A DNA stretch of 64,000 nt from Macrostomum hystrix (lineage: Eukaryota; Animalia; Platyhelminthes). Positions 1 to 13,688 of this stretch are shown one piece after another. The stretch spans positions 4,278,001 through 4,342,000 of the forward strand of contig CATNEN010000037.1 in assembly GCA_950097015.1 (NCBI GenBank), given 5' to 3'. The notes below the pieces were generated by a model. It searched no databases, was not told the origin of the DNA, and saw only the letters and a program-made list of their open reading frames with translations. Each line of letters begins with the position of its first letter. The stretch's first letter is position 1. The position numbers and the translations under genes were made by a program.

Positions 1-2959
1 CTGCGCCGCCTGCGCCTGCGCCTCCTGGCGCTCGGTCTGGCGACGGTCTTCAACCATGCGAGACTTCAGCCATTCGGCTTCGATGTCTTCAGACGGTGGC
101 TCGCCGCGCTCCATGCGCTGATAGCAGGACTGTAGGTACTGCTGCTTGTCCCGCACCTGCTGCTGCAGTTGCATGGCAGTGCTCATCAGCATGGTGAGTT
201 CAGCCGTGCCGGCCTTCATTCGCTTGGTAACGGAGCCCATGCGGAACTTGTAGCCGTTTACTTCTTTGGCCAGGGCCAGAGTGTCGTGCTGGCCGGCCTT
301 GCTCCGCCGCTCCAGCTGTTCCACCAGCCGGCCAACCGCCTCCAGCAGTAGTTGCCGCTCCAGCAGTTGTTCCTCCTTGGCTGCCAGGCGGATTTCCATG
401 TCCTCGCACTTATTGTGCAGCTCAATGGGACCCGGGTCGGTGCCCTCTAGGTAGCGCAGCCGACCGTCCTGGCCGGGGTCCTCGGTGCGCGACTCCATCA
501 GCAGCAGCCTGTCCTGACAGATGCTCAGCTGGATCTGCAGCACAGTCAGCTCGTCTTCAATCTGGCGCTTCTTCGGCAGCTTCTTCTTGGCCAGCTGCAC
601 CTGACGCTCGTCCTCCTTCAGCTGGAGGCGCAAAAAGTCTAATTCTTCTTCGCGCTGACGCAGCTCCAGTTCGCCGCGCTGAATAACGGCCTCCTGCACG
701 CGCACCTTCTCCTGAAGAACGTACACCTCTTCGTTGCGCTCGATGAGCTGCACGGCACGGTCGTTTAACAGCTGGACGGCTCGGTCGGACTGCTTGCGCA
801 GCTGAACCATGGCCTCCTCGGAGGCATTCACCAGTCCGTTGAGTTGGTTGATGTCCAATTTTAGCTGCTCACGTACCTCGTTCTGCTCGTCGTCGTTATG
901 TCGCTGCTTGCTCACCTGTTAATAGTTCAAGTGCACAGGCAGTTGAGCCATTTGTGCAAATTAAATTGATACATTCCTCGAGTTTTCATGTCAAAGAATT
1001 TTTTGACGAAGAGAATGGTCAACGGCTTTTATTGTTTTTTAAAGAATATTGTTAATTCCAACTCACCTCGTTGCGCAGCTGATCCCGCATCACAATCGAG
1101 TTGGCGTGACGTAGGCGCAGCTTTTGCAGGTGCTTCTCTCGTGTGCCTATGTTGGTGCGAAGAATCTCAACCTCGTTCTCCAGAATGCGAATCTTCTCTC
1201 GCATTTCTGAGGCCTTCTGGGCGGCCACCTGTACCAGGCTAACGCACTTGTTGCGCTCGTTTTTGATGACATCGTACAATTTGGCAAAGTCCTTCAGCTT
1301 CACTTCAAGCTCGCGGTGCTTCTTCTGGTGGTCCTGAATCTGCAACTGTCGACTCTTGAGGTCCTCAATGACACGTTTGTGCCGCATCTCTGCCTTCATG
1401 AAGTCTCGCGCCTTCTGTTCTCGCTCGTCGGCTTTGATAGCGGCCAGGCGAGTCAACTCGATGACTTCAATGCGCAGGTCCTGCAGCTTATACTGCAGCC
1501 GCTCCTCATCCTCAATGCTCTGGGTCACCTTGACCTGCTCTGCAGATGTCAGCGACGTCTCCTGGGCTACGTTGCGCCGGAAATCTTCGACCTCCTTGTC
1601 GAGGACAGCTTTTCGCTTCTCCATGGAGCCATCGTCGCGGGGCACGCTATCGAAATTCTGTTTTGTCTTCTCGTGTACCTGCGTCACCAAAGTGAGCGCA
1701 TCTTCGCTGGCCTTCTGCTGCAGCTGCGCCTTCTTAAGCGCCTTCAGCTCTCGCTCCTTCTCTCGCGCCTTTCGACTGTGTGTCTCCATCAGATTGCGTC
1801 GCTCTAGGTTCAAGTGACGCAGGTTCATGTCGATGGTGGCCCGGTCTGTAACCACCGTCATTTCCTTCTGGCGCAGCTCCTCCAAATCACCATTGATCTT
1901 ATCAACCGTCTCCTGGCTCTTTGAATTGCTGGTGACCTGTTGAGTGGCATCACGCTTCACGGTCTCCAGCTCTTTCGCCAGGCGACGAGATGCCTCCTCC
2001 AGGCTCTCCAACTGTTTCTGCATGACATCGATCTCAGCTTGTCGCTCTCTGGTTTCCTTCTCGCAATCGGTCTTCTGCTTTCGAACCCGCTCTGTCTCCT
2101 TGTTGAGCTGAGTTGGCAGGCCACTAACCTTGACTAAGTCAGACTTCTTCTGGTCCAGGTAGTCTTTAACCTTTTCCAGCTCGTCACGCAGCTCGGCGGT
2201 CTGCTGCTCAAGCTCGTACTTCGCCTCCGTTGTCTTCTTCTTTTCACGAAGCCTCTTGTTGATCTCATCCTGCAGTTCAATCTTGTCCTGCTCCAGCTGC
2301 TTGCGCCGCTTTTCGATGTCATCCGCCTTGGGAATTCTGTCGTACTCGCGCTTGAGAATGTCCCGCTCTTCCTTCAAGCACTGGATTTTGTACTCGAAGT
2401 CGTACACCCTCTCTTCGGTCAGGAGCAGCTCATTGTTGTATTTGAGTAGGGTCTCACGCAGCTTCTCAGCCTCAGATGAAACATTGTCAGGGAAGTTGTC
2501 CTGCTTGCCTAGCTCAGCCCGCTGGTGCTCCAACTCCAGTGTGTGCTGCTTGGCCTGTTGCAACAGCTGGAACTCCGAGTCCCGCGACCGCTTCAAGAAC
2601 TCAAACAGCTGCATGTACTTCGCCTTAAAGATGGCCACCTCCGTGCCTGTGAGCTTGCCCTGGTTGAACATGTCGTCCAGGTTCTTGAACGCCGGGCTAT
2701 TACTCACAGCCATCTGGCCCTCCGATTCTAGCGTGGCCTTGGTTGGAGGCAGCGCGTACACTGGTGCCTCGTAGTCGTCATCAACTGCTGGAAGGTCAGA
2801 GCTGTCAGCCGGACTGGTTGGCTCCAGGCCAAAGGCGTCCTCATCGTCAGCGTCCTCATCGTCCCGCTGCAGATCCGCTGGCAGATCGTCTTCGTCTTCT
2901 CCATCGTCTCCGAAGCCTCGTTTGGTTTTGACCTTGTCTTCGTCGCCTAGCGATGCCAT
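1..2959 (-). CDS. CCDC146: Coiled-coil motile-cilia protein CCDC146/MBO2-like; exon 1 = 2959..1067, intron 1066..916, exon 2 = 915..<1 (3' end outside window)
   Basis: ATG at 2959 (MASLGDE); the TTG start at 3004 in the ORF track is ignored. KLYDVIKNERNKCVSLVQ...ILENEVEILR...HANSIVMRDQLRNE resembles CCDC146. Donor GAG|GTGAGT at 1066, acceptor ACAG| at 916; exon 2 continues as coiled coil (VSKQRHNDDEQNEVREQLKLDINQL). Confidence 0.88.
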
Positions 2960-3120
2960 ATCGCTGTGCGACAGTTGCTGCTTGCTCTTTCGGGATGCTC
3001 TCAAATAAAAAGCACTAAGGAACTCGCAATTCTAAATACTAAAATGCCGAACTTAAAATGTCTAGCCTTGTGATATTTTCTGCTGTCTTCTTTTGCATGA
3101 AATTATTGTGAATTCAAATT

Positions 3121-3134
3121 GGCGCCGTAGCAAC
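3121..3134 (-). promoter_or_regulatory. Candidate RFX X-box upstream of CCDC146
   Basis: GTTGCTACGGCGCC on the minus strand; 10/14 match to GTTGCCATGGCAAC with one near-intact half site, about 160 bp upstream of the ATG of a ciliary gene. Confidence 0.45.
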
Positions 3135-4503
3135 GGGCCTTAGCGACAGCTCCAGCGCCTTTCCTTCTGGCAAAGGGTGTTTAGACTGCACAAGGTGGAG
3201 TGCGTAAGACTGTACACTTTCAGGTATGGAGTGTACAGCCGGTTTGGAGTATGAAAATTGAACAAATGCCCCTGCATGCTCTACCCTTGCATGCAGGTTC
3301 AACATCTCTTACCCTCCAAGCAGGCATGTTCTCTCTCAGCTCAGCTCTCAGTGTCAGTTAACACTGCCACACCAACCCCAGCGGTCATAAAATTCTCAGA
3401 TAATAAAGGCAGACAAAATATACTCTGTACGCCCACATGCGCCTACTGGCAATAGGTAAAGTAGTAAGCTAAGAAAATGAATGCTGCCATCAATTTAAAA
3501 TATCGCTGTCGCTGCTTATAAAAACAAAATTCACAGTCCATGCATAATACATATGTAGGCGCAAAAAGACAATGCAAAACAGTTATTCTTTATCCAAAAT
3601 TTAATTAAAAATTTAAAATTAATTTTGGAATAACAGATGTACAGTTATAATTTGTTTTGAGCTTGTTTATGTAGGCTTAGCTACTAGTAACCATTTTGCT
3701 ATAATTCCAACCTTTTTATAGCCAGTTAGGCCTAAACCCACCGTTACAATATGTGAAATTAACATCATTGAGTACTTTTACAGCATGGTCCAATATGCTA
3801 TACGCCTACTTTGCAACAGAGACCAGAAGCACTTTCAAACACTTTTGCAAGTGTGTGGCGTGTGCCAGCTGTCCTGAATGTCTGTTGGAAATTTCCTATG
3901 CACAGTACATGATCTTGAGTGTGTCCTTCTCAAGTGTGCCTACATATATGATGTGGTTGGCCTAGTCATAACTTTTAAGCGATTAAATTACTAATGGCTC
4001 TGTTTTTTTTTAATTTACTGGCTCTGTAGTATCATGCAGTTAAACTGATAATCGTTATTATTGGTAATAATAATAGGCCTATCATGTGCTTAATAATAGA
4101 AATTATATTTTTCTTATAAAGACAAAGCATATAGAAACCTAATGCTTCTAACTTTGACATTATAATCATTTATAGTCTTAAATATAAAATAGATTGTTTT
4201 ATATAAAATAGTTTTTTATTAATTTGTGTATTCTTTATTATTCATTTTGTTATTTAAAATAGTAAAATATACTTTCTTAATGCTAAGCACTAGTAAGGTA
4301 AATGTTAGGAGTAGGCTTTTCGAAATATTTAGCTGCATACTTCAATTGTTTTTATTGTCTAATTAGTACTTAGACTAGGCATATTAAATCAATTTCTACA
4401 AATTTATTTTTTTATTTATGAAGTATACTGAGTTTTTTCTTCAGGTAGCCTACCCTCTTTGCTCTAATCTTTATCTATTGATTCTATTTTCAGCCATTTA
4501 TTC

Positions 4504-4821
4504 ATGTCGAATCCCAGCCCCACTGCTCAAGACAGCCTGCTTCGGGCTGTACTTCTCAGCACTAAGAATGGTGTCCGACTATGCGAGCTGCAGGCCCAGT
4601 ACAGGGCCCTGGCTGGGCACGCCCTCAACCTGGCTGGACATGACAATGTGACTTCACTACTGCGCAGCTTGTCTAATGTAGGCTACATTCGCCTAGTGAA
4701 TGGCGAGTTAGTCGCATTTGGTCGAGAAACAGAGGAGACAAGCCACATCTGCTCGCTTATCCAGCGACAGAGAACAGGCGGCGGCAACCGAGGCGCTAGT
4801 CGAGAATGCCAACTATTATAG
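4504..4821 (+). CDS. Stand-alone extended LOTUS (OST-HTH) domain protein, TDRD7/TDRD5 N-terminal type, 105 aa; possible out-of-frame extension to 5014
   Basis: LRAVLLSTKNGVRLCELQAQYRALAG ... LLRSL ... ETSHICSLIQRQR aligns by eye with the TDRD7 LOTUS (LRAVLQSHKNGVALPRLQGEYRSLTG ... ETARIAQLVARQR). A pyrimidine-rich acceptor TTTTCAG ends at 4493, 10 nt before the ATG. Confidence 0.85.
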   Translation: MSNPSPTAQDSLLRAVLLSTKNGVRLCELQAQYRALAGHALNLAGHDNVTSLLRSLSNVGYIRLVNGELVAFGRETEETSHICSLIQRQRTGGGNRGASRECQLL

Positions 4822-5994
4822 GTCTGATTATAAGCAGCAGCGGCAGCGGGTCTGTCTGTCTGTTATCAACGTCGATGAGGAAAGCGACAAGGACTTGCCC
4901 TGCCGGTTGGTGCGCCTCGGCGAGGCCAACACAGGCGGCCTGCGTGTCACCATCAGTAACGATAGGCACAGTGCGGTCCGGTCTAGCCATGGCCGCTGGC
5001 CAGTCAGGGTCTAATTGAACTGCTTGGAAACTAGTTGTGTGGCACCTAGCGCACTATTAATGTTCGTTGTAACTGTGTGTGTCATTTTACAAAAAAATTA
5101 AGGTGCCATTTGCTTCGTATTGCTTCCCCAGCTAAAATCAATAAGATCTCATGTTCTTTGTGCTGCCCAATGTTGTTTTAATGATTTATTTTATTTTTTT
5201 AGCTTCTCCTTTGTCTTTTTAGTTTTTTGGTCTTCTTAGTTCAATTTGATATGGCTGCATCGATTGATTTTAATCGAACTTTGTGCCTGATCGATAGAAC
5301 ATTTGCACAATTTTCAGCTTTTGCTCGTAATTTACTAATTTTGTTATTAACTAACGTTAGATCCAAGTGTCAACAGTTATATTTTATTTCATGACTTACT
5401 CCTGCCAATATGCTTATACCTTCGAATTTATAAATGTAGAAATGTATCTTTGCATTTCATCCTTGCCTAGGAACTTTCCACTACGAGACTTTCTTTTTGT
5501 CGTCGAAACTAAAAGAATATTACTTTGCAGTTGTAAATTGGACGTATTTTTTTTGTTAAAGTTTATTTGGGTACTTTTAAATTTCGCATTCGTAGTCATT
5601 CTTTGTGCACAGCATGCTTAGCTTGTGCAGATTAAAAATAGTGCTAGTTTTTTCCTCGTCTATTTATTTCGTATTTTATATTCGTTATTATTTTGACGAT
5701 AACTTTGTGTCGTATGTTGCATCGATTGACTCCAAGAAGCAAATATATACGTTGACAAGTCTCTAAAATCACTCAATTCTAACTCAAGTATATACCCATT
5801 GTTCGATCTTGGAATTTGCAGATCAAATCGCAGATCGCAGATCTTTGAGGGTTGCCGTTCATTTTCTTCGTTATGGTAGGATTGTTGAAGTCGGGAAGTC
5901 TTATTTTTTTATTTAAAGTCGGCACCCAGGGTAGATCGTGAAATCCGTCATTGACACACCACCAGCTGTAACTAGCTCCCTCTATTTTACGGCC

Positions 5995-6375
5995 CTCACT
6001 CCTACAACCTCCTCACGCCATGCCTCTCTTACAGCCCACTCCTATACAACCACCTCACTCCGTGCCTCTCTTACAGCCCCACTCCTACAACCACCTTACG
6101 CCATGCCTCTCTTACAGCCCCACTCCTATACAACCACCTCACTCCGTGCCTTTCTTACAGCCCCACTCATACAACCACCTCACGCCATGCCTCTCTTACA
6201 GCCCCACTCCTCAACCACCTCACGCCATGCCTCTCTTACAGCCCCACTCCTACAACCACCTCACGCCATGCCTCTCTTACAGCCCACTCCTATAACCACC
6301 TCACGCCATGCCTCTCTTACAGCCCCACTCCTCAACCACTTCACGCTATGCCTCTATTACAGCCCCTACTCCTAC
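5995..6375. repeat. ~43-bp minisatellite
   Basis: Tandem units like CCTCACGCCATGCCTCTCTTACAGCCCCACTCCTATACAACCA. Confidence 0.9.
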
Positions 6376-6573
6376 AACTACTCACAAAGTCTTTTCTCAT
6401 TGCGGTTTATGTGCATAAACACATGAAACACACGTCTGGATGTTGCTTCGTTAGCCTCTTAATCTTCAAACTAAAATATGGTACGATACGCAAAATAGGC
6501 TTTTAACTGCACAGCAAGGCAAACTGCACGAGAATGTATTTCGAGCATTCATTTGAAGGGAATTCAAGTGGTC

Positions 6574-9255
6574 TCAAGCACACGTCGGCACACTCGCAGC
6601 CGCTACAGTCAGCATCTCGACCGCCTCCTCGCCAACCAGCAGGCACTGCTCCCGCTCCCGCTTGAGTGTCTCTTCGGCCCAGAGCTTCTCCCGGCCGCTG
6701 ACGAAGCCCTCGGAGTCGCGCACGGTTTCTGGCAGCGGCATATCCTTTGTCTCGGGCAGCAGGAGGGCGGTGAAGGCGGTGAGGATGCTGAGCCCACCGA
6801 ATATGAGGCCGGGAAGATAGTGCACACTGTTGCCAAGCGAGTTGATTGGCGGAGCCAGAATGTTTGCAAGGGCGGCCAGCCCGGTGCCCAGGAAGAGGCC
6901 ATTGTTGCGAACTGCGGTTGGGAACACCTCGGCTGACCAGACCTCCATGATGCAGTAGCCAGCTGTGAGTAGGCACTTTCCTGCCAGTGAGTAGTGTGAG
7001 AACTGTCATTTAGGTGAGAAATGTCATTTATTAGATGAGAATTGCGATTGATTAGATGAGAATTGTGATTTCGGAGATGAGAAATGTGATTGATTAGATG
7101 AGAATTGTGATTGATTAGATGAAAATTGTGATTTAGGAGATGAGAAATATGATTGATTAGATGAGAATTGTGATTTAGGAGATGAGAAATATGATTGATT
7201 AGATGAGAATTGTGATTTAGGAGATAAGAAATGTGATTGATTAGATGAGAATTGTGATTTAGGAGATGAGAAATATGATTGATTAGCTAGATGAGAATTG
7301 TGATTTAGGAGATAAGAAATGTGATCTATTGGATGAGAAATGTGATCTATGGAATGAGAAATGTGATTGATTCGATAAGAATTGTGAGTTATGGGATGAG
7401 AAATGTGATTGATTAGATAAGAATTGTGATTTTTGGGATAATAAATGCCATTTAGGAGATCGGAAATGAGAAGAACGGAATGAGAAATAGAATTTATGGG
7501 GGAAGAAATGTGATTTTTAGGATAAGAATGTGATATAGTTCGCGAGTCAACGTCTAGCAAATAAAGCAAACAAATTCCCGATTGATCACCCACCTGACAT
7601 GGCAACAATGGCCTTGGCTACAGGGTAGCTGGCATCCGGGATGTTCGGCACGGCCACCACGCACACTCCGCTCACAGCCGTCAGGGCTAAGGTGGTGTAT
7701 TTCCTGCCCAGCCTATCACTGAGCAGCCAGGCCAGGAAGTAGCTGGGGATCTCCACGGCGCCGCTGACCAGCACGTTCACCACAATGCTGGAGCTGATGA
7801 AGGTCGTGTCGGTGGCCAGGCCGAAGTAGCAGAATGTGAACATTGTGAGGAAGTTGAAGATCACCAGCGTCTTGGTGCGCATGCGCGGGTAGGAGACCAG
7901 CTCCAGCAGGTTGCCCGTGGGCTCGCCCTCCACCTCCACCTAGTTGCGTGAGCAGAGCGCTTCCTGTGAGACCCCTGCCCTCAGTGCCCCCTGCCCTCAG
8001 TGCCCCTGCCCACAGTGCCCCTGCCCTCAGTGCACTCCTGCCCTCACCCTCAGTGCCCCTGCCCTCAGTGCCCCTGCCCTCAGTGCCCCCTGCCCTCAGT
8101 GCCCCTGCCCTCACCCTCAGTGCCCCTGCCCTCAGTGCCCCTGCCCTCAGTGCCCCCTGCCCTCAGTGCCCCTGCCCTCAGTGCCCCCTGCCCTCAGTGC
8201 CCCTGCCCTCAGTGCCCCCTGCCCTCAGCGCACTCCTGCCCTCAGTGCCTCTGCCCTCACCCTCAGTGCCCCTGCCCTCAGTGCCCCTGCCCTCAGTGCC
8301 CCTGCCCTCAGTGCCCCTGCCCTCAGTGCCCCCTGCCCTCAGTGCACTCCTGCCCTCAGTGCCCCTGCCCTCAGTGCCCCTGCCCTCAGTGCCCCTGCCC
8401 TCAGTGCCCCTGCCCTCAGTGCCCCCTGCCCTCAGTGCCCCCTGCCCTCAGTGCCTCTGCCCTCACCCTCAGTGCCCCTGCCCCTCACCTTGTTGGCCCT
8501 TTGCCGCCAGCTGATGCCGTTCCACCTGGCAATGCGGCGCAGCACCTGGATGGCCTCATCGATGCGGCCGCGCAGCACCAACCACCTGGGCGACTCCGGC
8601 ACTATGGTGAATATCACGATATAGTTGATGCAGAACAGCAGCGAGAACCACTGGATGCGGCGCCAGTCCTTCAGAAGGTAGACTATCACCCCGCTGGACA
8701 TGTAGCCCACACACCAGAATAGCCAGTAGAGATTGCCTAGCATAGCCCTGTGTTTCTTCTGGGTCATCTCCTCGATGATCAGCAGTCCCTGATAGTACAT
8801 TGCGGCCGGGAAGCCTATGCGTACATTTCAAGAGCGGAATGCATTCAGTTAAAAAGTCAGTGGTACAGCTGCAGCGACTGCTGTTCAGTCCATGGACTCT
8901 GGCGCCGCCACACCCGTTTTAATTACTATCCTAGATTATGTTTTAATGACAGTTTAATTGAAAGTATTTCAAATACCCGCAGTAAATATTTTTGCATCTC
9001 TCAAAATATTAAAACATCGCCTCGGACTTCCAGTTTCACAAAACATCTGCATCGTCGAGATATTGGAGACGATTCTCGTCGGCTGTCTGGTGGCAAAATC
9101 AAGCAATCCAGGCATCACTTTTCTGTTAAATATCATGCCTAAATATGGATTCGCCATAGCAGTTTGTACAGAGTAATGTTTGTTGTCGTCGTCACCAGGT
9201 CTTTGAAAAAAATCGTTGAATACCTCGATGCTGACGTCGGACGGCTTTGGGTAGG

Positions 9256-9895: not shown

Positions 9896-10366
9896 GCTGA
9901 ATGAGCCCAACTTCAACACTAAAATGCTATGTAAAGTGTAACTGTCGTCTGTTGCTTCTCAGCCTTTCTTCTCACAATGCCACTGACCAAATTCCTGCGT
10001 TGATATACTAGTATTATTCAGAGACGGGTCCAGCGCAACCGTTCGCATTATCAGACGGCGCGCGTGACTCTATGGTGCTGCAATTGTTGTGCAAATCGAA
10101 TCGTATTACTAAGGCCGCCCCTGGTGTGACCGTCCCGTTCCAGTGCTTTTTCGGTCCCCGCACAGGGAGAGCCACTGGCAGCACTTGCTGCACCGCTTCT
10201 ATGCGGTTCCCTTTGCACTTTAATAAGCTGCCAAGGCAGTCCGGCATTAACAAAATAAGGGGGCTGCAATGCACAACGCATGAACGTTAGCGCGTAATCC
10301 TCTCCTATGTTCTATCTGTCTATTTATCTATCTATAGACATAGCTGCCGGTAGCTTAGTTTAACCA

Positions 10367-10660
10367 CTTGTAGCTTAGTGGTTAAAGCATCGGACTCACG
10401 ACTTGAAGGTCGAGGGTTCGATTCTCGACTCCACTGGAGCAATCTGTGTCATTTAGCAAGACAATTTACTCCGTATTGCTTCAGTTCAGCAGCTGATAGC
10501 TGCCAGTGGGTGTGGCGTTCCCCCAGTCCATGGTCTGAACAACCGTACGCAGTCTTCAGTTACGCCACGCAATAGCTGCCGGTGTGCTGTCGGCTGCACA
10601 TCTGACCCAATTGGGGAATGCGTAATCAATTATTATTTATATTACTGTTATTATTATTAC
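10367..10660 (+). mobile_element. tRNA-derived SINE family A (CORE-like body), copy 1
   Basis: A box TAGTGGTTAAAGC, B box GGTTCGATTC, body TGTGTCATTTAGCAAGACAATTTACTCC...CTTCAGTTCA, (TTA)n tail. Homologous to 39781 and 58405. Confidence 0.85.
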
Positions 10661-12242: not shown

Positions 12243-13185
12243 GGGAGTGCAGTTAGGAGGGCCACTGAGGGATCTGGGAGTGCAGTTAGGAGGGCCACTG
12301 AGGGATCTGGGAGTGCAGTTAGGAGGGCCACTGAGGGATCTGGGAGTGTAGTTAGGAGGGCCACTGAGGGATCTGGGAGTGCAGTTAGGAGCTCAAACTG
12401 AGGGATCTGGGAGTGCAGTTAGGAGCTCAAACTGAGGGATCTGGGAGTGTAGTTAGGAGCTCAAACTGAGGGATCTGGGAGTGTAGTTAGGAGCTCAAAC
12501 TGAGGGATCTGGGAGTGTAGTTAGGAGGGCCACTGAGGGATCTGGGAGTGTAGTTAGGAGCTCAAACTGAGGGATCTGGGAGTGTAGTTAGGAGCTCAAA
12601 CTGAGGGATCTGGGAGTGTAGTTAGGAGGGCCACTGAGGGATCTGGGAGTGCAGTTAGGAGGGCCACTGAGGGATCTGGGAGTGCAGTTAGGAGGGCCAC
12701 TGAGGGATCTGGGGGTGTAGTTAGGAGGGCCACTGAGGGATCTGGGAGTGCAGTTAGGAGGGCCACTGAGGGATCTGGGAGTGTAGTTAGGAGGGCCACT
12801 GAGGGATCTGGGAGTGTAGTTAGGAGCTCAAACTGAGGGATCTGGGAGTGTAGTTAGGAGCTCAAACTGAGGGATCTGGGAGTGCAGTTAGGAGCTCAAA
12901 CTGAGGGATCTGGGAGTGTAGTTAGGAGCTCAAACTGAGGGATCTGGGAGTGTAGTTAGGAGCTCAAACTGAGGGATCTGGGAGTGTAGTTAGGAGGGCC
13001 ACTGAGGGATCTGGGAGTGTAGTTAGGAGGGCCACTGAGGGATCTGGGAGTGTATAGTTAGGAGGGCCACTGAGGGATCTGGGAGTGCAGTTAGGAGGGC
13101 CACTGAGGGATCTGAGTGCAGTTAGGAGGGCCACTGAGGGATCTGGGAGTGCAGTTAGGAGGGCCACTGAGGGATCTGGGAGTGC
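12243..13185. repeat. 33-bp minisatellite
   Basis: GAGGGATCTGGGAGTGCAGTTAGGAGGGCCACT with a GCTCAAACT variant. Confidence 0.95.
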
Positions 13186-13460
13186 GGTAAGAAGGATAAC
13201 ACAAGATGACGCAAGTCTTGACTACCTTTGTACCTTTAAGTGTACTAAATAAAAAGTAATGATGTTTTGTAATGTCAATTACATATGGAAATATTCACGG
13301 ATAGGAGAATACCGCGTCACTCAGTTTCTATTAAACGTACAAAAAGCATTTATGCAAAGTGCAAAGAAATGCGTGCAATTACAAAAGAATGACTGCAAAG
13401 ATTCTCACTGTCAGCTTTTAATGAATTGAAGGCCCTATTGTAACAGTAGAAGGCCACGGA

Positions 13461-13688
13461 GTATTTCAAATACCCATTTTTCCCTTTTTTGTATCTTCTA
13501 AAATATTCAACCAATCGCCAGAACTTTTCCGCTCTATTGGATAACATTCCAGAATCACAAAACATCGGGGTGTCTGGTGGCAAAGACCACCAATACAGGC
13601 AGAACTTTTCTGCTCACAAAATTTCATCATGTAACCAAGTCGTGAAGTAGGCATTGGATTTGAAATACCCCCGTGATCTTTCCCCAGG
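13461..13688 (+). mobile_element. HINE-like element, copy 2 (shorter)
   Basis: GTATTTCAAATACCC ... GTCTGGTGGCAAA ... GGATTTGAAATACCCCCGTGATCTTTCCCCAGG. Confidence 0.6.

Follow-up and report, generated by a model that had tools for sequence, protein, structure and literature searches.

A short open reading frame (ORF) in the 64-kb window (that is, the whole analysed stretch of 64,000 nucleotides of Macrostomum hystrix DNA) encodes a LOTUS domain and hardly anything else. It is quite probably the frameshift-truncated, ancestral-locus copy of a Tudor-less extended LOTUS (eLOTUS) gene of about 208 aa, whose locus has been captured by a repeated element. On this reading, the native gene encodes an N-terminal eLOTUS domain and, after a linker rich in Q, R and G, a short C-terminal block that is conserved. 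The loss of 116 bp from the linker would have shifted the frame and left a 105-aa LOTUS-only product at a locus that is still transcribed, and an element of 7-12 kb would have taken up about 1.6 kb of this locus and carried it to at least nine other sites, five of them with the full ORF. The native protein would dock onto a Vasa-type helicase by means of its LOTUS domain, with the tail perhaps making a second contact, and the 105-aa product could still dock, albeit without the tail. Most likely, the truncated copy is a decaying allele, or at best one with a partial function, and not a purpose-built microprotein.

eLOTUS domains are Vasa docking and activating modules in germ granules, and their usual hosts are large scaffolds such as Oskar, TDRD5/7 and MIP-1/2. 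The short Tudor-less eLOTUS architecture described here seems to be new and, going by the databases, confined to Macrostomum. Judged from the sequences, the capture and spread of a small eLOTUS gene by a mobile element appear to be new as well. The features of the locus are collected in Table 1.

Table 1. Features of the LOTUS locus and its surroundings (positions in the window)
Feature	Position	Strand	Remarks
ORF, including stop TAG 4819-4821	4504..4821	+	residues 1-100 homologous to the family; 101-105 (ECQLL) are a frameshifted tail
Polypyrimidine tract and AG acceptor (ttttcag; AG 4492-4493)	4487..4493	+	10 nt 5' of the ATG
Extended LOTUS (OST-HTH), residues 10-90	4531..4773	+	winged-helix core and C-terminal helix; Pfam, PDB phmmer, model, Foldseek
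eLOTUS C-terminal extension helix, residues 76-91, ETEETSHICSLIQRQR	4729..4776	+	helix in the model; in the predicted helicase interface
Deletion junction with 3-nt GAG microhomology	4802..4805	+	116 nt missing relative to all nine paralogues; DNA alignment
Out-of-frame C-terminal remnant (ENANYY...LVRLGEANTGGLRVTISN...GRWPVRV; stop 5012-5014)	4802..5014	+	frame of ORF 4718..5014
Locus segment also present in element-borne copies (86 nt of 5' flank, ORF, about 1 kb of 3' flank)	4418..5993	+	blastn, 84-91% identity
Stretch resembling the element backbone (el38 1419-1794)	4104..4418	+	about 72% similarity; LOTUS-less elements have that backbone segment
Convergent SLC22/sugar-transporter-like gene, terminal exons	6577..7940	-	Pfam Sugar_tr (weak); tblastx to M. 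lignano; synteny anchor

The LOTUS domain and its extension helix

The sequence-only reading had described an ORF of 105 aa with an acceptor of its own, and it is present exactly so in the letters. In the DNA alignment the acceptor before the ATG is kept in nine of nine paralogues, the Macrostomum lignano orthologue has an AG acceptor 9 nt ahead of its ATG, and an RNA-type contig (X5 record 25; these contigs are described below) begins at window position 4497, just past the acceptor AG. Its role could be in cis, joining a 5' exon that is not seen here, or in trans, as a site of spliced-leader trans-splicing.

The LOTUS identity of the ORF is beyond chance. The Pfam family OST-HTH (PF12872) matches residues 8-59 with 23.2 bits (E 6e-5), slightly below the gathering score of 23.8; the corresponding values are 19.8 bits for the 208-aa paralogue and 25.2 bits for a paralogous 577-aa frame (L016). 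Among the PDB sequences, phmmer finds the LOTUS domain of Oskar (E 7e-6, residues 10-90), TDRD7 (5e-5) and TDRD5 (1.6e-3). An AlphaFold2 model of the 105-aa product, made from an alignment of 53 LOTUS sequences, has a mean pLDDT of 82 and about 90 over residues 11-90. It consists of helices at residues 6-18, 26-37 and 49-55, strands at 60-65 and 68-73, and a C-terminal helix (ETSHICSLIQRQR) at 80-87, which spans residues 77-92 in the model of the 208-aa protein. Both the model and Foldseek indicate a winged helix-turn-helix fold, with a three-helix core and a beta-hairpin. The top Foldseek match is human TDRD7 3rco (TM 0.87, rmsd 1.6 A), followed by Oskar 5nt7_A (83 columns), TDRD5 3s93 and Tejas 8wxs, and the top 29 matches are all LOTUS domains.

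Jeske et al. (2017, PMC5458760) defined the eLOTUS subclass by a C-terminal extension, which Vasa binding requires in addition to alpha2. In the window ORF the winged-helix core is followed by such an extension, able to form helix alpha5. It aligns with the extension of Oskar in 5cd8/5nt7 as far as residue 90, and H81 and Q89 are nearly invariant across the 53 LOTUS sequences. The initial assignment of a LOTUS domain including its C-terminal helix is thus one on which PDB phmmer, the 53-sequence model and Foldseek agree.

The ORF had also been called Tudor-less, and this description applies more widely than to the ORF itself. A six-frame search of the whole genome with TUDOR (PF00567) gave no match inside the window, the nearest ones on the same contig being located 60-70 kb upstream of it, and the domain is equally absent from the 105-aa and 208-aa proteins and from the M. 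lignano orthologue. Pfam finds OST-HTH alone in the 105-aa and 208-aa proteins, with no OSK (SGNH-hydrolase-like) domain.

In fold and subclass, the domain is reminiscent of the N-terminal eLOTUS of TDRD7/Tapas and TDRD5/Tejas, including the C-terminal extension helix. Unlike in TDRD5 and TDRD7, no Tudor domain C-terminal to LOTUS is encountered in the gene, the window or the orthologue, and the native protein is small, its roughly 208 aa comprising no more than the eLOTUS, a linker and a short C-terminal block. The LOTUS domain of Drosophila Oskar is the best PDB sequence match, at only about 29-32% identity, and the OSK/SGNH domain sets Oskar apart from the proteins studied here. A parallel in architecture may be sought in the C. 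elegans proteins MIP-1/EGGD-1 and MIP-2/EGGD-2, which two reports (PMC8331183, PMC8616582) describe as Tudor-less proteins composed of LOTUS and intrinsically disordered regions that bring a Vasa homologue to germ granules. They have two LOTUS domains, are much larger than the 208-aa family and are likened to it at the domain level. A protein of 208 aa consisting of an eLOTUS domain and a short motif would be a compact natural tool for learning what eLOTUS does alone, in a flatworm genus that is in use for stem-cell and germline work.

The native gene family and the deletion in the window copy

A six-frame search of the genome (220 Mb in 42 contigs) uncovered nine further copies on other contigs, with 89-94% amino acid identity. 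The paralogous ORF has 208 aa and represents a single-exon gene. A word search with this 208-aa query among 5.8 billion clusters returned one protein, the M. lignano hypothetical protein BOX15_Mlig017850g3 (P0001), which has 218 aa and shows 38% identity across 94% of the query length (E 6e-28). With a family profile, HMMER finds the same protein as the only full-length match among 1.84 billion representatives (E 1.5e-83), and the other 80 matches align through the LOTUS part alone. OST-HTH occurs in 80 of these 81 relatives, which is strong evidence from the opposite side for membership in the LOTUS family, and Tudor in 27 of 81, LOTUS there being usually N-terminal.

The M. lignano ORF is uninterrupted, is contained in a single exon and has its own stop. 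Common to both species are the LOTUS domain with its helix, the Q/R/G-rich linker and a C-terminal block, LVRL..GG..LRVTISN..RWP, and the remnant of this block in the window is conserved in P0001. The C-terminal part of the family protein has no relatives detectable by HMMER among the 1.84 billion representatives, and a search of the ESM Atlas for look-alikes of the C-terminal 69 residues gave no usable match. In a structure prediction of the 208-aa protein from six sequences (mean pLDDT 42), residues 93-208 are predicted to be disordered and without a fold. Among database relatives, none was found whose native end lies directly behind the LOTUS helix; in the orthologue and in every paralogue, the frame continues. 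The orthologue search, proposed earlier as a way to find a conserved single-domain architecture, gave as the sole full-length relative a protein of 218 aa with linker and C-terminal block. In a literature search, no paper was found that joins Macrostomum with a LOTUS domain or that names Mlig017850.

The family does not stand alone in the genome. On the same contig, 165 kb downstream of the window, there is a 577-aa frame (L016:5306-7036; C37:4447306-4449036) with an N-terminal LOTUS domain 46% identical to that of the window, an RG-rich stretch behind it and then a long tail. Tudor exons were not found within reach of this frame. Of the host paralogues of the small LOTUS gene, it may be the nearest. 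Short frames of about 137 aa, with a LOTUS domain 38-40% identical, are located at L021:4159-4569 (C2:4777158-4777568) and at C3:15553729 and 15557885; one frame of this type lies only 4 kb from an element-borne copy on C2. From these sequences, there seem to be several small LOTUS genes in the genome.

In an alignment of the ten copies, the window copy is the only one that lacks 116 nt after about position 4804 (116 gap columns were counted). The loss causes a frameshift, 116 not being divisible by three: beyond the junction five novel residues, ECQLL, precede an in-frame TAG at 4819. The GC-rich, coding-like block extends beyond 4821 to about 5015, where ORF 4718..5014 ends, and the frame-2 tail of the window matches the C-terminus of the family. 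Correspondingly, the open frame measures about 223 aa in most of the nine paralogues versus 117 in the window. The deletion appears to be recent, because the out-of-frame C-terminal remnant is still recognisable. The idea of a LOTUS-only microprotein, which was the core of the sequence-only reading, is not supported as a description of the gene: the nine paralogues and the syntenic orthologue code for about 208-218 aa, and the window copy has been cut short by a frameshift. More generally, short ORFs that end inside coding-like GC-rich blocks should be compared with their paralogues before they are called microproteins.

The assembly is supported here by sequencing contigs of a particular kind. 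Three runs (X2, X3 and X5) were taken as RNA-like on the basis of contigs that are limited to exons and break at splice sites, none of them being recorded as RNA. Their contigs contain exons only, break at positions 1062 and 6983 and differ from the sequence beyond, while the DNA run X1 is continuous there. Such contigs give no transcript ends, strand or level. Contigs of X5 match the window copy over 4497-4665, 4673-4804 and 4775-5007 with 0-1 mismatches, and contigs of the undeleted paralogues are also present among the RNA-type contigs. The contig over 4775-5007 (X5 record 27) spans the deletion junction without mismatch. Therefore, transcripts are made from the truncated copy, and a second study bears out the junction. 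As 4433-5228 is without a contig in DNA run X1, confirmation of the deletion comes from the assembly and the RNA-type contigs of that other study alone.

It could be imagined that the deletion is a segregating allele, with an intact 208-aa allele of this locus in the population and the broken one in the assembly. This is a possibility of some weight, although it is on the unlikely side. A further contig, X5 record 28, is exact over window positions 4775-4804, including two positions that set the window apart from all nine paralogues, and then enters the 116-nt segment; no assembled copy has this combination, the best one having 1 mismatch. Because this suggests undeleted sequence with window-type letters, the deletion may be polymorphic and not fixed, and the same run also holds the deleted form. 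However, the argument depends on 30 letters in one low-depth contig at a site without cover by DNA contigs, and record 28 may stem from an allele of this locus that is intact, from a paralogue missing from the assembly or from a chimeric unitig.

Predicted helicase docking and tests of selection on the copies

Three tandem genes for Vasa-like DEAD-box helicases (L030, L031 and L032), about 5 kb apart and with motif VI HRIGRTGRCGNTG, are located at C25:7420843-7434271. For one of them, the best matches among solved structures are Vasa of Bombyx and of Drosophila (E 2e-79 and 4e-77), followed by DDX3X (2e-68), and its residues 174-339 align with the Vasa C-terminal domain of 5NT7. The complex of the 105-aa product with this C-terminal RecA domain from its own genome is predicted with an ipSAE of 0.83 in three runs, compared with 0.00 for the best of 3 controls; contacts agree between runs to at least 88% and the pLDDT of the partner is at least 79. 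In the calibration of this score, 51 of 78 solved complexes came up to the mark, as did 2 of 108 mismatched pairs.

The predicted interface involves LOTUS residues 11-20, 36-39 and 76-91. It is formed by an N-terminal core helix and the C-terminal helix, much as alpha2 and alpha5 are used in Oskar (PMC5458760), the helices being compared in kind and not mapped one-to-one. Because a like complex (5NT7) has been solved, passing the test is to be read as likeness to the Oskar-Vasa mode and not as proven binding; it may reflect a memory of 5NT7. The complex model that had been recommended as a check passes its controls with the C-terminal helix in use, in the sense of a likeness and a predicted binding only. 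From homology, fold and the complex model, the LOTUS domain would dock onto a Vasa-type C-terminal RecA domain via its first helix and its C-terminal helix.

The 208-aa ORF is kept in five element-borne copies (L002-L006), and the other four (L007-L010) have stops or indels. Over the ten copies in the genome there are 23 synonymous and 63 non-synonymous changes, the latter including 6 stops, which corresponds to an omega of about 0.87, not different from neutral (P = 0.33 for an excess of synonymous changes). Variable sites are distributed 29:14:21 over the codon positions. Between the two species, pN of the LOTUS part is 0.23 against a saturated pS of 0.82, and pN amounts to 0.46 in the linker and 0.42 in the tail. 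By this comparison, the LOTUS domain is strongly constrained between the two species, with a looser linker and tail. There seems to be no sign of current selection on the truncated form or on any copy in this genome, as judged by tests of low power.

These data bear on the question whether the 105-aa product, once it had arisen, was maintained as a functional microprotein, which would either activate Vasa as a free protein or compete with larger LOTUS scaffolds. The LOTUS domain and its helix are intact, free of stops and indels and modelled with confidence, transcription proceeds across the deletion junction, and the modelled complex with the own Vasa-like domain passes its controls. Moreover, the LOTUS part has diverged by 3-4% from the paralogues versus about 10% in the flanks. 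On the other hand, the fixed differences of the window copy in the LOTUS part are spread 3:3:3 over the codon positions, and pairwise comparisons of this copy give an omega of 0.5-1.1, with little power because each pair offers just 3-5 synonymous changes. The recognisable remnant speaks of a recent deletion, and database relatives, orthologue and paralogues do not stop where this product stops. A maintained microprotein is thus unlikely, and the truncated gene of the 208-aa family remains the preferred explanation.

The ancestral locus and the repeated element

In M. lignano (L022), the LOTUS gene occupies 10001-10657 (+), and downstream of it, at 12583-13640, lie convergent SLC22-like exons, which match window 6577-7940 in tblastx; gene order and orientation are the same in both species. 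By comparison, the LOTUS gene is the sole part that the dispersed copies share with the M. lignano locus. Because of this LOTUS/SLC22 synteny, which is clear on the downstream side only, the window is considered to be the ancestral locus. A relaxed dN/dS had been named beforehand as the mark of a retro-pseudogene fragment of tdrd7. The relaxation is indeed seen among the copies of this genome (omega about 0.87), but the fragment is not: the locus is ancestral and syntenic, the closest multi-domain paralogue is 46% identical, and the lesion is an internal deletion of 116 nt and not a truncation of a cDNA.

The nine dispersed LOTUS copies are all located inside a repeated element of 7-12 kb, for example from L011:5854 to L017:5623 (C24:3947353-3957122), with further copies on C38, C1, C10 and C2. 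At least six copies have an exact common left boundary, (A)CTAGATTGAAGG..., with unrelated flanks. The common right end, ...CTGCACTTCGACCTAACTAG, is preceded by a palindrome with a 21-bp stem. Both ends carry ACTAG and a short imperfect terminal inverted repeat. At 97% identity or more, the genome contains at least 24 left ends, but LOTUS is present in about nine elements only. Window 4418-5993 corresponds to el38 1795-3790 at 84-91% identity, and LOTUS-less elements keep the backbone (el38 1-1794 and 4341-7100) without the window-matching part, although some of them also match window 5362-5993. The element copies are 96-99% alike and therefore young, with the window copy as their outgroup. 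The window stretch 4104-4418 could possibly have offered the patch of homology at which the element acquired the locus.

Capture of host genes by DNA transposons is familiar as Pack-MULE or Helitron-type transduplication. The present case is similar in that an element with defined ends bears about 1.6 kb of host sequence and that LOTUS-less versions exist. It differs in that the captured piece is a whole small gene and not a fragment, and that no transposase was found in the element; a 240-aa open frame in its backbone has no Pfam match. A Helitron, for which the 3' CTAG and the hairpin could be adduced, is ruled out, since TC is lacking at the 5' end and the right flanks do not regularly show T. 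Long terminal inverted repeats were also discarded: the 1,070-bp inverted arms on C24 consist of a second, inverted left end, and other copies of the element have one left end or two direct ones. Head-to-tail neighbouring elements have one ACTAG between them, pointing to recombination at a short identical site or else to tandem or circular junctions. Tandem units of 10 kb on C1 contain only the LOTUS-less backbone and an unrelated reverse-transcriptase fragment. Beside a LOTUS-less element, at L057:514-3769 (C1:24658513-24661768), there are reverse-transcriptase (YIDD) and protease ORFs of an LTR-type retrotransposon, which lie within the C1 unit repeated every 10 kb.

The direction of the transfer could also have been the reverse, the window copy being an old and by now degraded piece of an element with LOTUS that had inserted beside SLC22. 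The resemblance of 4104-4418 to the element backbone and the matches of 5362-5993 with some LOTUS-less elements are compatible with such an insertion. It is nevertheless improbable in view of the same place and orientation of the M. lignano gene relative to SLC22, the young age of the element copies with the window copy outside them, and the result that no element terminus was found anywhere in the 64-kb window.

With the window as the ancestral locus, a host gene of germline type has been broken at its original site while copies on a mobile element persist and are transcribed, which makes this a clean case of gene capture and turnover. One might go further and speculate that the element expresses the captured eLOTUS gene from many sites and that these copies, or the truncated product, act as Vasa decoys that weaken silencing of the piRNA type. 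If true, Vasa of the germline or of neoblasts would be titrated off Tudor-bearing scaffolds to the benefit of the element; we regard this as very improbable. Hardly any credence can be given to the last alternative, in which the 116 nt are an intron lost from the window copy and about 105 aa is the normal family product: the segment can be placed as GT...AG given the GAG microhomology, but a GT there is expected about 1 in 16 times under that microhomology, RNA-type contigs of paralogues (X3 record 20, X5 record 28) run from exon into the segment with no joint reported, the segment is as GC-rich as exons against 22-28% GC in the flanking non-coding DNA, and in M. lignano the ORF is uninterrupted with the C-terminal block conserved in the unspliced frame.

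Two other features of the window were observed. Strand-skewed tandem-repeat tracts at 5938-6426 (+) and 7024-7608 (-) flank the terminal exon of the SLC22 gene; their GC skew goes down to -0.75 and up to +0.9, and they generate long artefactual ORFs of repeated peptide units. Upstream, 1052-3004 (-) holds an uninterrupted, coiled-coil-like ORF of 650 aa without Pfam match, which is well covered by RNA-type contigs; these show the splice break at 1062, and the transcript ends near 3080-3108.
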